Assembly: GCA_033442325.1 (NCBI GenBank) | Contig: JAWQFM010000005.1 | Coordinates: 112,320 to 176,319 of the forward strand | Reading direction: 5' to 3' | Length of the DNA: 64,000 nt | From: Salpingoeca rosetta | Lineage: Eukaryota; Protista; Choanoflagellata | Shown here: positions 55,801 to 62,000 of the stretch, piece after piece | How positions within the stretch are numbered: the stretch's first letter is position 1 | Layout: each line of letters starts with the position of its first letter | Translations under genes and position numbers: made by a program | The notes under the pieces: model-generated | Told to the model about the DNA's origin: nothing | What the model saw: only the letters and a program-made list of their open reading frames with translations | Databases searched by the model: none

Positions 55801-58800
55801 GGGGCACAGCTCGTTTGGCATTGCGCTTGCTGGTTTGGGCCACCATTGCTCGCATCACCACGACACAACCACGAGCATCCATACAGCCTGCCTTTACTTT
55901 GTTGCCCCTCACGAGCAAACCCATCTTTGTATTCTTAACAGCACTGGGTGCAAGCCAGGGGATTGGCCGGGTTGATTCCAAACTTCAACTGCCCACTCTG
56001 CCGTGCCCCTTCCAACGTTGCAGGTGTGTATGTGCTGTTGTGTGTGTGTGTGTGTCTGTGTCTGTGTGTGTGTCTGTGTTCTTGTGCGTGTGTGTGTGTA
56101 TGCGTGCGTGTGTGTGTGCACTGATGTTTTGTGTGCGTGAAAGTCGCCCATGCACTCACTCTTTCGCTCACATCATCTCACCCACGCTTTTTTCACGTGA
56201 CGACGCACCACCACCCACATCCCGCCCTCCTTCCCACGTCCGACATCAGTGCCGTACATTGTGAGCGAAATCACGCTGACTGCACCATCCCAATCATCGT
56301 CATCGTCATCATCGTCATCACCATCATCATCACCACCAACCATGACACCGTCCACGGCCACCGCTGCCCTGCTCGCCGCGTCCCCGGCCGTGTGCAGCCT
56401 CAACACGACACCAGAGAAGCCTGCCCATCGTGCCCCGAAACGCTCAGACGAATTCAGGGCGCTCTGTGCACGCGGTGCTGGCTCAAGCACCCGCGCTCGC
56501 TCCCAAGAGACAGACACCCACCGTACGATGTGCTTTTGAAGCGTGACTGTGTGTGTGCGTGCGTGTGTGTGTGTGTGTGTGTGTGTGTGCGTATGTAGTG
56601 CGTGTGCGTGTGTGTGTCGGCCGCAAAAGGCTGGCGTTTGCGTTAATCCCTTGTCGTTGCTCTGCAACCCCCCCCCCCCCCACACACACACAACCCCATC
56701 CCCCAACCCCATTTTCACCCCACCAGCGCTCTTCCTCCCTCACCCATGCCACCACGTCAACAACATCTGCAGTGGCCAACCTGCTGTTCTTTGACGAGGC
56801 GGCGATGATGGCGATGAGTGCGGAGACGAAACCGCGACCTCTCGTCAGCATCGTCCCCATCTGGCAGTCGCTCGCGCAGACCATCGCCTGTGTCGAGCTT
56901 GCGCACAAGCACCAGGCAGACAAGGACAAGCCAATCGCCAAGAAGTGCGTGTTCTGAGCGGATGTGTCTGAGTGTGTGTCTGTGTCTGTCTGTGTGGGTG
57001 TGTGTGTCTGTGTCTGTCTCCCAACACCTTGCGAACACCGTCCGTGCGCTTGCATGCGCATGCATACATGTTGTGTGGGTGTATGCACAAGTGTAGCACA
57101 TCTTTCCTTTATTGACGTCTACTCACGCTCTCTCATTGACATTCACTCCCCCGCACACCCTCCCACCAAACGCACCATCAAACCAACCCGCCTCATCCCC
57201 CTCTCCATCTCCAGGTCCATGCAAGCGCTGTCGATGCTGCGCACATATGTGCACGAGTTCTCGTCAAAGGCGAACGTCCGTCTGCCCGAAGTGTTCACGC
57301 GCATCTTCGCGCACACGCAGCAGAAGAGCGGCGACAACGGCGACGATGGCGATGATGGTGCCAGTGCTGCCTCCACGGCCACGCTGAACATTCCAGGGGA
57401 ACTGGAACCACTCAGGGTGAGGAGGAGGGGGGGGGGCGATTGGATGGTGCAGTTTCTGTTGGTGTGGAAATGCTCTGCTGCTGGTGCCGCTGCTGGTGGT
57501 GGCGGCGGTGCACTCAAGCATGCAACTCACAGGCGCTGAAATACACATACATACATACATACATACACGTGTTTTACACAAATACACCCTCACACACGCA
57601 CGTACACATTCACATACGTTCACACACGTTCACACAAATTCACACACATTCACACACATTCACACACATTCACGTCCATCCGCATCCACCCTCCCCTCTC
57701 CCCTCTGCCTCCCGCCAATGCAACAGGTGCTTGTGTTCCTGACTGCAGCCATCTCCACGGTGGCACCAGAGACGACGCGTCCACCAACAGCGGTCGTGCC
57801 CGTCCCCTTTGCCGCATGCGTCGCCGTGTCACTCTACTGGTGTGCACTTCGCGAGGCAGCACGCACCGCAGCGCAGCCAGCGCCCACGAAGCAAGCAGAC
57901 ACCGACGCCAGTGACGAAGGTGCGTGTAGTGTGTGTGTGTGTGTGTGTGTGTGTGTGTGTGTGTGTGTGTGTGTGTGTGTGTGTGTGTGTGTGTGTGTGT
58001 GTGTGTGTGTGTGTGTGTGTGTGTGGGTGCGTGTGGGTGCGTGTGGGTGGGTGGGTCGTCATCGTGGTCGTCGCCGCCAGCTTGTCGACTGCATACCTGT
58101 TTCAATCCATAGCCACCAGCTGTCTGCTCAAGTTTCACCAATGACGTGCTTCCCTGACAGCCGTTGCCTCCGTCGCCGCGTCGCTCCCACCGCTCTTGAA
58201 AGCAGCGGGCTTTTCTTCCACCCTCCCAACCGGTCAGTTTGCTGTGCACCACGTGTTGGTGTTGTGTCGCGTTTGTGGCATGTTTGTATGAGCGAGCGTA
58301 TAGAACCTGCATTGCTCCACCCAATCCTCGGCTCACCCATGCCATAACAACCATGTTACGGCCACCACGTGTGTGTGTGTGTGTGTGTGTGTGTGTGTGT
58401 GTGTGTGTGTGTGTGTGTGTGTGTGTGTGTGTGTGTGTGTGTGTGTGTGTGTGTGTGTGTGTGTGTGTGTGTGTGTGTGACACCAGAGTCGTCGCTCGCG
58501 GCGGATGTGGTTGAGCGGTGCACTGCTCTCTGTCGCCACGCCATCCTTCTGAGGGCCGCGCTCCAGGTGACTTCGCTCGCCTTCTGTTTGCTTTCACTCG
58601 CCTTTCGCATGCTTTTGTTTGCCTTGGTTTACTTGTTTGCTTCGTTGCTCGCTTTCGTTTCCCTCCCGTGTTGCTTACTTTGCACCGCCCCCTTCACACC
58701 AGCGCCGTCGCCTCATGCTCCTTGTGCTGCTGCTTCGTGCCAGGACGAGACGGACGAGTGCAACCTGCCGCGCGACCTCAGCTCGTGTTTGCAGCGTTTG

Positions 58801-58882
58801 AATCTCCCGCCTCTTGTGGACCTCTTGTCCAGCGTCGCTCCCACAGATCGCCACATTCGCGCCTGGGCCGCAGCCCTCAAGG
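43853..58882 (+). CDS. UBR1: UBR1/UBR2-type N-recognin E3 ubiquitin ligase (UBR box, ClpS/N-domain, basic region, RING-H2); no stop codon or C-terminal domain found
   Basis: UBR box [38 protein letters not shown]|..[17 protein letters not shown]; ClpS-like [11 protein letters not shown]|[16 protein letters not shown]; [12 protein letters not shown]; [12 protein letters not shown]; PVSLHHPL; GHWVRNG; basic region [24 protein letters not shown]; [20 protein letters not shown]; late exon [22 protein letters not shown]. Confidence 0.92.
46079..46221. repeat. (CAT)n array (intronic)
   Basis: Directly visible. Confidence 0.95.
48066..48242. repeat. (GTTT)n array (intronic)
   Basis: Directly visible. 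Confidence 0.9.
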
Positions 58883-59094: not shown

Positions 59095-62000
59095 ATGGCT
59101 GCTGCGACATGGTCGTGGCTGAGCACTGTGTGCAGTGACACGCCCGTGCTGTCCTTGCACGACTGGCTGGACCAGAACCACAGCACCCACAACAGCCACA
59201 GTACCAACACTGGTCGCGCAGTGAGAAGAAATGACTCTTCCTCCACTTCCGCCACATCGCCTGCGTCTCACCTGCTGCGCAACCATCCAGCGGCACAGCC
59301 GCTCCTCACCTCCATCATGGTCGCGCCAATTCAAGGTGTGCATGTGAGAGAGAGTGAGAGAGTGTGAGTGCATGCCGCTGTGTATGTGTGTGTGTCTCCT
59401 GTGACTTCCTGCTGTGCCGTTGTTGCGCGTTCAAGGCTTACCACCACTCCACACCACCTTCTCATCCATTCACTTTGCCTCTCCTGTGCAGATGCCCCTG
59501 TCTTTGACCAAGCTGCCGCGCGCATGCCTTCGCTGTCTTCGCTTCCATACATCCTCCAGCGCGTTCTCATTGGTGTGTGTATGTGCTTTTGTGCGTTTGT
59601 GTGTGTGTGTGTGTGTGTGTGTGTATTCGATTCACTTCCTCACACACGAGCCATACATGTGTACACATCCGCCCTTGTGTTTGCGATGCAGACCTGTTCG
59701 AGTCGTGCCAGTCGCCCACACATGTGCTGTGCCTCGGATTTCGTCGCTCCACCGGCGGTGATGACAAAGGATCCATCAAGGCTGTTCCGGAAATACAGGT
59801 GTGTTCGTGTGCAAATCACAAGTGTGTGTGTGTGTGTGAACATGCCTTGTGTGCATGTCTGGTGTGCGTCTCAACACGTGCATGCGCAAGATGTTCATGC
59901 ACTGCTGACACTTAATTGCTGGCATACACACTTGTGCCTTAGGCCGTGTTTCCCAACACGCTCCATGCCACGATCAAGAGCAAGCCGTGGCGTGCCCTGC
60001 ATGCCGCCCTCGGTGACTACACCATCTTCTACATCCTCCGCTACATGTTCGTGTTCCAGCGACTCCACAACAACTGCCTCCTGCAGGTCAGTAACGGTTT
60101 GCTTGCTGTTGACAGCTGTGGGCTCCATGAACAAAGTTGGGCCAGCGTGATTTCACGCACTTAATCCTCAATCTGCCAGCAGCAACACTGGCAGTGCTGC
60201 TTCTTTACCTCACCGTCCCTTCAACTGCACTGTCGTTCTCTCGTTCCGTTTCCACAACAGCTGTCTGGCCCGTCTCTCGGCCTCTCTGCGCGATCACAAA
60301 TGCGCATCGAAGACCCAATACGAGCAGACGGCGACGACGACGCCACGTCCTCCCAGCAGCAGCAGCAGCGCGTTTGTGCAGGCAATGACGGCGATGATAA
60401 CAGTGACAGCTGCGAGGAAGGAGGAGAACCCGCAAGCAAGAGAGCGAAGATGCAGGAGGTGCCACAACAACAACAACAACAACAACAACAACTTAAACAA
60501 CAACAACAACTTAAACAACAACAACAACTTAAACAACAACAACTTAAACAACAACAACTTAAACAACAACAACTTAAACAACAACAACAACTTAAACAAC
60601 AACAACAACTTAAACAACAACAACAACAACAACAACAACAACAACACCGGAGGAGCCGACGACGGAGAAGACGTGGGCGGAGAAAGCAGCAACAGCAGCA
60701 CAGAGGCAGCACTAATGGCAATGTCTCGACATCAGACGCCATCACGCACATGCATGTGGCAGCATCAAGTGCAACAACAGCAACAGCATCAGGGAAAGGC
60801 TTGTTGAATGCGCAACATCGCCACACGTTGATGATCCAGCGATCAAAGATGTTTTACGCATTCAACCTCTCCGAACGCATGCCGGCAGACCACCCATTGC
60901 TGAAGGTGCAAACGTCGTGTATGTGTGTGTGTGTGTCTGTCTGTCTGTCTGTGTCTGCGTGTGCCTGTGTCTGTGTCTGTGTGTTTGCATCTGTGGTCAG
61001 CGCGTGCTCACAATACGACTTACCTTCGTCTTCAATGACTTGCCCTCGCCGTCCTCACCCTCCTGTCGCTGTTTGTTGTCCATGATCAACACCACCACTG
61101 CACAGCATCGCCCCTCTGGCAACGGCACACGCCGCCTTCTCCGCACAATCTTCGCTGGTGGTGGTGGTGGTGAAAACGTCCGGTTGAATCGACGATTGTT
61201 GCAACATGCAGAGACATTCACGCAATTCATCCGCAACGCACACCGCCTGCAGTTCAAGCGGCTGCTCAACAGGTGTGTGTGTGTGTGTGTGTGTGTGCAT
61301 GTGTCTGTGTGTGTATGTGTGTGGTGTGGTGTGTGTGTGCATGTAGTGTGTAGATGAGAAGCTGTTATCAGCTTTGTGCACACCTCCGAGACCTATTGCA
61401 CAGTGCTTACGATGCGCGTACGCTGTGCTGTGTACATTTGGGGTGTCAGGACTGCTCCGTGCACGTGCCGACGACGCCAGCGCCACGAGCACCCCAACGT
61501 GATGCACTGTGGTGATGAGAACAATGATGGTAGTGGTACGGCGGCTGCTGCTGCTGCAGATGATAATGATGATGATGGTGATGATGATGATGACAACAAC
61601 CGGTTTGACGCCTTGCTGGAGGACGACTTTGCGACACAGGTGCGCGCACCCAATGAAACTAAACCCAGTCATTCGCATACTCTTGCTGGTCGTTCTGCTG
61701 CATACCTGTCTCCGCGCTGGTATGCACGATCGATTCACTCGCCCAATACTCACGTGCACGTGTTCAGGATGAGGACAGCAGCGAGGAAGAGGACGACAAC
61801 GTCGGCACGAAAGATACACACATGTGCGCCACCACTGTGAGTGTCACCACCAATAATGGCACCGGCGGCAATACAGCACAGCAGTCGGCCTCAACGTCAC
61901 GCGCACACTCCAAAGTCGTGCACAGGAGCGCAGATATGGAAACGCTGTTATCCAGCACAACTCCGCATCACCAGGTTGGTGTGTGTGTGTGTGTGTGTGT

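Follow-up and report, generated by a model that had tools for sequence, protein, structure and literature searches.

An apparent fusion of UBR1 and telomerase reverse transcriptase in Salpingoeca rosetta very probably reflects an assembly misjoin

Overview

Within a 64,000-nucleotide stretch of scaffold C5 of the Salpingoeca rosetta assembly (hereafter the window; positions 112,320 to 176,319), a UBR1-type N-recognin gene appears to run in frame into the gene for telomerase reverse transcriptase (TERT). We find that this run is very probably an assembly misjoin at window positions 59043/59044 and not a fusion. A preliminary description had put forward two readings, a UBR1-TERT chimera with TERT in place of the UBR1 C-terminus, and an assembly artefact that removed the 3' end of UBR1 and the promoter of TERT. 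The first gives way to the finding of the C-terminal UBR1 exons on another contig; the second was correct as to the kind of event, and placed the break inside a GT tract, although it lies further downstream. An N-degron E3 ligase fused to telomerase would, if real, be a striking new architecture.

The features on which the argument turns are listed with window coordinates, strand and supporting evidence.

44535..44969 (C5:156854-157042 and 157205-157288), + strand: the two UBR-box exons of the UBR1-type N-recognin gene (PF02207, tblastn)
58486..58566, + strand: penultimate UBR1 exon in the window, read from the sequence (P0006 residues 1423-1446, within a continuous alignment)
58744..58882, + strand: last UBR1 exon in the window, with a phase 1 donor, AAG G/gt
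58883..58993, + strand: (GT)55 tract, first part of the UBR1 intron (TRF period 2, 55.5 copies)
58994..59043, + strand: unique UBR1 intron sequence, homologous to C5:31-83
59043..59044 (C5:171362/171363): probable misjoin point, UBR1 intron to the left and TERT 5' flank to the right (X3 contigs, junction 60-mer)
59044..59094, + strand: TERT 5' flank and leader, including caacag, homologous to C4 from 1990948 downwards on the minus strand
59095..59335, + strand: TERT exon 1, ATG at 59095 (RNA joint 59335/59492, GT..AG, in an X17 contig and an X23 read)
59492..59572, + strand: TERT exon 2 (RNA joints 59335/59492 and 59572/59692)
59692..59798, + strand: TERT exon 3 (RNA joints 59572/59692 and 59798/59943)
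59943..60086, + strand: TERT exon 4, TEN domain (GQ region; PF11474), followed by an intron at 60087-60260 in the X17 RNA contig
62670..62858, + strand: TERT RNA-binding domain with T motif, FYITERSKDKNAVLFYRK (PF12009, 57.4 bits)

The in-frame features

The sequence features that suggested a fusion are all present as first described. The last UBR1 exon in the window (codons 58744-58881) ends at the donor AAG G/gtgcgt at 58882/58883, and a 204-nt interval ending in caacag at 59086 is followed by TG ACG ACG ATG. A splice from 58882 to 59087 would read K-V-T-T-M, in frame with the TERT start codon, and the unspliced route is likewise open, with a stop-free ORF at 58369..59367. As evidence for a fusion these in-frame features amount to nothing beyond chance, because any junction has a one-in-three chance of being in frame. 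The stop-free unspliced route is uninformative since most of it is (GT)n, which translates as (CV)n, and the caacag at 59086 does not speak for a fusion because it is part of the TERT leader that is kept also in a paralogous copy on C4.

The UBR1 gene and its 3' end

The identity of the upstream gene is given by its UBR-box exons, which score 27.6 and 27.0 bits against zf-UBR (PF02207) in Pfam at 44535-44723 and 44886-44969, and are 60-68% identical to residues 58-141 of the Salpingoeca infusionum UBR1 protein P0006 in tblastn. A candidate ClpS-like N-domain near 45900 was recognized by eye only; the corresponding profile, PF02617, is present in relatives. At the 3' side, the last window exon aligns to GCLNQLDLPPLHDIL of P0006 in a blastp search with the conceptual splice. 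Profile searches with PRT6_C (PF18995) give no match anywhere in the window, in agreement with the reported absence of a UBR1 C-terminal domain there. The last window exons also give no PRT6_C match in Pfam; conservation is low in this part of PRT6_C, and alignment to the orthologue was therefore used instead.

A search of the whole assembly locates the missing part of the gene. The first 4,087 bp of the same scaffold form a contig (C5:1-4087, contig 1) that carries the last three UBR1 exons, comprising 168 codons and a stop, at C5:125-1113. Positions 292-432 of PRT6_C match solely at C5:73-768, and scans of the individual exons with PF18995 score 55.3 bits at C5:127-342 and 67.8 bits at C5:601-759. 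Contig 1 begins within (GT)n like that of the window tract (C5:1-30), followed by 53 bp of UBR1 intron sequence; the intron runs on from C5:31-83 to an acceptor, cag/GT at C5:124/125, whose phase matches that of the donor at 58882. In the conceptual splice the frame is open up to the stop codon at C5:1111-1113, and the product aligns by blastp to P0006 residues 1423-1641 (E 4e-33, 33% identity) gaplessly across the join. A search for transcript-derived proteins spanning RAWAAALK/GAPASAL, with the window exon and PTSG_11490 as queries and narrowed by a length filter, found only PTSG_11490 itself. This 127-aa orphan, which covers the UBR1 end, is the sole annotation on contig 1, which also holds a complete DEAD-box helicase gene.

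Contig 1 is a separate WGS contig with (GT)n at both ends, that at the right end being long. It is followed by a 100-N gap and then by the left telomere, (CCCTAA)~49 at C5:4190-4483, so that contig 1 is placed beyond the chromosome end, a scaffold position that is impossible. The UBR1 3' end that had been described as removed is indeed missing from the window, but it is not lost; it is parked outside the telomere array.

The join point in independent DNA data

The join sits 50 bp past the GT tract, outside the repeat and in unique sequence. Upstream of their match to 59044-59117 or 59047-59117, X3 DNA contigs do not carry UBR1 intron but sequence that agrees at 28 of 31 positions with the region flanking the C4 paralogue; the third record, an exact match to 59044-59117, reads ...CTTGCCGAAAAGCA upstream. 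Depth sums fit an X3 contig that covers 59004-59043 and ends there, while 59043/59044 is crossed by no X3 contig and the depth sums at 59060-59109 are fully explained without one. For the junction 60-mer (59014-59073) no public run is listed, in a test of two sampled words only; the surrounding 4 kb is present in 20 runs from 8 studies. Between X3 and the window there are differences at several nearby positions, and X3 may represent another strain or unassembled paralogues; its 30-mer upstream of TERT is absent from the assembly at up to three mismatches. A loose end in X3 behind 59396 leads to C15:1389340, a locus that shares only microsatellites with the window, and was treated as a graph artefact.

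The account of these data that we favor is that the contig containing the first ~90% of the UBR1-type gene is chimeric, and would pass from UBR1 intron (to 59043) directly into TERT 5' flank (from 59044). The skipped chromosome stretch would include at least the 4,087-bp contig 1, which carries the remainder of the intron, the final three UBR1 exons with the C-terminal half of PRT6_C and the stop codon, and the DEAD-box helicase gene; the scaffolder, with no gap to fill, may have put this contig on the telomeric end of C5 instead. The physical location of contig 1 between 59043 and 59044 is our inference, as is the origin of the chimera. With a chimeric contig and a skipped stretch, UBR1 and TERT are almost certainly two ordinary and separate genes.

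The two versions of the intron piece bear on a second type of artefact, which likewise involves no fusion. Window 58994-59046 and C5:28-83 are 91-94% identical, and the copies differ at 5 of 53 places, which we put down, as an unproven reading, to contig-end errors. Such divergence would be expected of two real copies of a '(GT)n + 50 bp' unit, one in the UBR1 intron (the contig 1 version) and one just before TERT (the window version), between which the assembly collapsed in the GT tract and dropped everything in between; the long (GT)n at the right end of contig 1 is compatible with this, and 59043/59044 would then be real sequence. The X3 contigs nevertheless stop short of that position and have other sequence upstream of the TERT flank, the junction 60-mer is without any listed run, and in the reads the homology between TERT and its C4 paralogue extends to the left across 59044, evidence against a natural boundary at that position. 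Given that the intron homology extends 50 bp past the tract and that the reads break at 59043/59044, we rank a collapse low and regard it as improbable.

The TERT gene and its transcripts

The downstream gene was correctly recognized as TERT. TEN_TERT (PF11474) scores 26.0 bits on 59943-60161 (E 1.2e-5), barely above the cut-off of 25, and Telomerase_RBD (PF12009), with 57 bits, is present as a single copy in the genome. Reverse transcriptase motif 1 (LRFVPKKSSVRLILNM) and motif B' (QTQGIAQ, ~C5:186356-186517) were both recognized by eye, and the motif-1 exon has no Pfam match. Runs of N interrupt the gene at C5:176320-178593, 180320-185564 and 186783-188563, and the remaining reverse transcriptase motifs (2, A, C, D and E) and the C-terminal extension fall within them. 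The partial copy of the TERT 5' end on C4 is 1.9 kb long and 85% identical; its kinase-side flank has no paralogues in the assembly, with microsatellite matches only. By analogy with this C4 copy, a kinase gene placed head-to-head with TERT is predicted in the missing upstream stretch.

RNA reads were examined over window 58960-60440, where the depth is tiny: X23 gives 14 reads and X22 gives none. RNA covers spliced TERT exons only, with exons 1-5 joined, and begins only inside exon 1. An odd RNA joint, 60082 to 60257 (GC..CA), was rejected, since the canonical intron 60087-60260 yields it when displaced by four nucleotides and allowed one mismatch. RNA is absent over 58960-59109, and 59087 shows neither a joint nor a loose end, a weak negative with only 14 reads. 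A 2017 comparative study reported that neither S. rosetta nor M. brevicollis yielded a TERT orthologue (PMC5405514); contrary to that report of an undetectable gene, S. rosetta has a transcribed and spliced TERT gene.

The transcripts and the relatives also bear on the possibility of a real chimeric locus, in which a rearrangement set TERT behind a C-terminally truncated UBR1 and moved the UBR1 3' exons elsewhere. The sequenced ATCC 50818 culture would then yield a read-through or spliced UBR1(deltaC)-TERT transcript, and the later Illumina data would stem from cultures or strains without the rearrangement. The assembly consensus itself, the frame match with the open unspliced frame, and the absence of a UBR1 stop codon from the window all agree with such a locus. 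It is opposed by the missing junction in independent DNA data, by intact and in-phase UBR1 3' exons on a contig at an impossible scaffold position, and by RNA that is absent over 58994-59109 with no splice into 59087. A UBR1-TERT architecture is also absent among relatives, since 44 UBR1 homologues, among them the complete ORF of S. infusionum, all lack a TERT domain. We consider a chimeric locus highly improbable.

A real break in UBR1 without any fusion, leaving a UBR1 pseudogene or a two-piece gene with TERT transcribed from its own start, would explain the two separate contigs without assembler error, and would fit the RNA cover that starts only inside TERT exon 1. Yet every exon on either piece retains its open frame and splice sites, and the exons can be aligned to a full-length orthologue, the junction is unseen in independent reads, and with contig 1 beyond the telomere the scaffold order carries no information. 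This is the least probable of the alternatives, and we favor a misjoin between two intact genes.

Implications for the reference genome

The S. rosetta reference contains a misjoin, as we interpret it, at C5:171362/171363, together with a 4-kb contig placed beyond a telomere. UBR1 is divided there into a long model and the orphan PTSG_11490, and TERT is broken by N runs and lacks the true promoter in this assembly. Those using the reference for studies of UBR1 or TERT, for promoter work or for surveys of gene fusions would be misled.

Comparison with known systems

Draft assemblies rich in microsatellites have contigs that break at long (GT)n, as here, and the stray contig shares familiar traits with them, being small, bounded by (GT)n, scaffolded beyond a telomere, and associated with a join that independent reads do not reproduce. 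Unlike the usual microsatellite misjoins, the false join proposed here is 50 bp past the repeat in unique sequence. As in known TERTs, the S. rosetta gene has a TEN domain, an RNA-binding domain with T motif, and, as read by eye, reverse transcriptase motifs 1 and B'; it differs in being broken by three N runs and in having lost its true 5' flank in this assembly. With the UBR1/UBR2/PRT6 N-recognins of the Arg/N-degron pathway S. rosetta shares the UBR box, a RING-H2-like exon, and a C-terminal PRT6_C with CLLCG...YVDEHGE. When the window and contig 1 exons are joined, S. rosetta UBR1 is collinear with the complete 1,666-aa S. infusionum UBR1. Compared with known N-recognins the protein is ordinary, and the only difference is that its gene is cut across two contigs here.

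Sequence around the UBR1-TERT junction

The source strain of the window (G000:C5:112320-176319, plus strand) is Salpingoeca rosetta ATCC 50818. The preliminary description had a UBR1-type N-recognin gene running in frame into telomerase reverse transcriptase (TERT), and the sequence features it cited are all present. The upstream gene has a UBR box at 44535-44969 and an exon at 58744-58882 ending AAG G|gtgcgt, and the donor is followed by (GT)55.5 at 58883-58993. The motif caacag ends at 59086 and is followed by TG ACG ACG ATG, such that splicing from 58882 to 59087 would keep the frame, and the ORF 58369..59367 is free of stops. 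The downstream gene is TERT (TEN_TERT, 26 bits; Telomerase_RBD, 57 bits), and the UBR1 C-terminal domain (PRT6_C, PF18995) has no match within the window.

The 3' end of UBR1

A whole-genome search with PF18995, similar to a check that the preliminary description had proposed, recovers the domain: PRT6_C positions 292-432 match a single site, C5:73-768, on the same strand and at the extreme start of the scaffold that also carries the window. The first bases of C5 lie inside a (GT)n tract, followed by 53 bp with 91-94% identity to window 58994-59046, ~40 bp of polypyrimidine-like sequence, and an acceptor, cag|GT, at C5:124/125. The G left over from the donor at 58882 and the GT of this acceptor give Gly, and the frame goes on APASALTTPEVFHSLIDLPESF...CLLCG in the first of three exons, the other two being as follows.

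UBR1 3' exons downstream of the first
C5:601-759, second 3' exon, ending ..YVDEHGEPDPGL
C5:985-1113, third 3' exon, ending ..RWIAM, then stop

The first two of the three exons have Pfam scores of 55.3 and 67.8 bits. A conceptual splice of the last two UBR1 exons of the window with these three aligns to residues 1423-1641 of P0006, a complete 1,666-aa UBR1 ORF of Salpingoeca infusionum, in one block (E 4e-33) with no gap at the join K73|G74, and fragment P0003 likewise covers both sides of the join. In the public annotation this 3' end appears only as PTSG_11490 (XP_004987483.1; C5:125-1113), a 127-aa 'hypothetical protein' on a 4,087-bp contig, whose model takes an internal Met as its start and leaves out 40 codons of its own first exon. 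On sequence grounds, PTSG_11490 is the predicted C-terminus of the UBR1 gene begun at window ~44400-58882. The genome has two other UBR-box genes (C5:540992-541357 and C20:369851-369997, both minus strand); neither has a PRT6_C match, and they are thus not second copies of this UBR1.

The contig bearing the 3' exons (C5:1-4087) has (GT)n at each end, and a gap of exactly 100 N follows it. Immediately past this gap, and internal to the scaffold, the chromosome has its left telomere, a (CCCTAA)~49 array at C5:4190-4483. Since a gene-bearing contig cannot sit beyond a telomere, the contig is a stray one that was joined to the end of the scaffold, and its placing outside the array is a scaffolding error. 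It also bears a complete single-exon DEAD-box helicase gene (C5:1639-3582, 648 aa; DEAD 143 bits, Helicase_C 82 bits), which probably sits just downstream of UBR1 in the real chromosome.

Position and nature of the join

Beyond the GT tract, the first half of the interval corresponds to the stray contig and the second half, 59053 onwards, to C4:1990948 downwards (minus strand), at a partial paralogous copy of the TERT 5' end on scaffold C4. Somewhere between 59043 and 59053, UBR1 intron thus gives way to TERT flank in the window, and the switch point lies in unique sequence 50 bp past the GT tract. The preliminary description had raised an assembly artefact within this tract; the artefact is favoured, as a chimeric contig, but its location is not.

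The 4-kb surroundings of the junction are contained in 20 public runs from 8 studies, and the read-based examination covered window 58960-60440. In DNA run X3, one contig (record 3, depth 87) is identical to the window over 59044-59117; its 64-letter stretch preceding 59044 ends in CTTGTCCTTCCTGTGTCTTGCCGAAAAGCA, which is unlike the UBR1 intron and agrees with the flank of the C4 copy at 28/31 positions. A second X3 contig (depth 160, C at 59087) does likewise from 59047. In bin 59060-59109 the depth (359 = 87.1 + 159.8 + 22/50 x 254.8) is wholly accounted for, so no further X3 contig reaches across the junction, and the residual depth in the two bins to the left is consistent with a single contig of depth ~118 over 59004-59043, ending there. 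Neither the X3 30-mer upstream of the TERT flank nor a paralogue of the C4 flank is present in the assembly, showing that the true TERT upstream region is unassembled. Two words sampled from those spanning the junction (59014-59073) returned no public run.

The absence of the join from the X3 contigs and the presence of the UBR1 3' exons on the stray contig argue against the fusion preferred in the preliminary description; a real chimeric UBR1-TERT locus is very improbable, and a real break of UBR1 that yields no fusion product slightly more so. The two intron copies, in the window and on the stray contig, have 5 differences in 53 bp, which we attribute to contig-end errors. A real second intron copy, with collapse inside the GT tract, would explain these differences, but the switch lies outside the tract and we consider this unlikely. 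A chimeric contig is, with high confidence, the best explanation of the run-on. At 59043|59044 it would pass directly out of the UBR1 intron into the TERT flank, leaving out at least the stray contig; UBR1 and TERT would then be separate genes, quite possibly still neighbours with a few kb between them.

TERT and its partial copy

TERT exists in S. rosetta, and is spliced and transcribed. The gene lies in window 59095-64000 and C5:176320-188563, and its recognisable parts are the TEN domain, an RBD that includes the T motif, RT motif 1 (~63250) and motif B' (~C5:186356-186517), these last two read by eye. An RNA contig (run X17) and RNA reads (X23) contain exon joints 59335|59492, 59572|59692, 59798|59943 and 60086|60261, all GT..AG. 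RNA cover begins at ~59110-59190, with none at 58960-59109 and neither a joint nor a loose end at 59087, at a depth (14 reads in X23, 0 in RNA run X22) so low that absence is not proof. Lai et al. 2017 reported that neither S. rosetta nor M. brevicollis had a detectable TERT orthologue (PMC5405514). Three N runs cut the gene (C5:176320-178593, 180320-185564 and 186783-188563) and may explain why it was missed; within an incomplete coverage of the literature, we found no later correction.

The RNA-binding domain is single-copy in the genome, whose second TEN domain is that of the C4 fragment. This copy (C4:1989069-1990948, minus strand) is partial, spanning 1.9 kb with 85% identity to the TERT 5' end, includes the leader and exons 1 to about 5, and lies head-to-head with a protein-kinase gene. 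GTG replaces ATG, exon 1 is short by 30 bp and exon 2 has a 1-bp deletion, suggesting that it is probably a pseudogene fragment, with the frame of its TEN-like exon still open. X3 DNA contigs and X23 RNA have clustered differences from the reference over window 59044-60082, some being C4-copy letters (G/C/G at 59134, 59136 and 59140) and others in partial agreement only; further clusters lie at 59724/59735/59738 and at eight places in 59786-59940. X3 has two versions of the TERT flank, neither in the assembly. These differences may come from a mixture of strains, from paralogues missing from the assembly, from gene conversion, or from reference bases of poor quality beside the misjoin.

Comparison with other UBR1 proteins

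A search with P0006 found 44 UBR1 homologues. All have the usual set of ClpS, winged-helix, UBR-box and PRT6_C domains, and none has a TERT domain.
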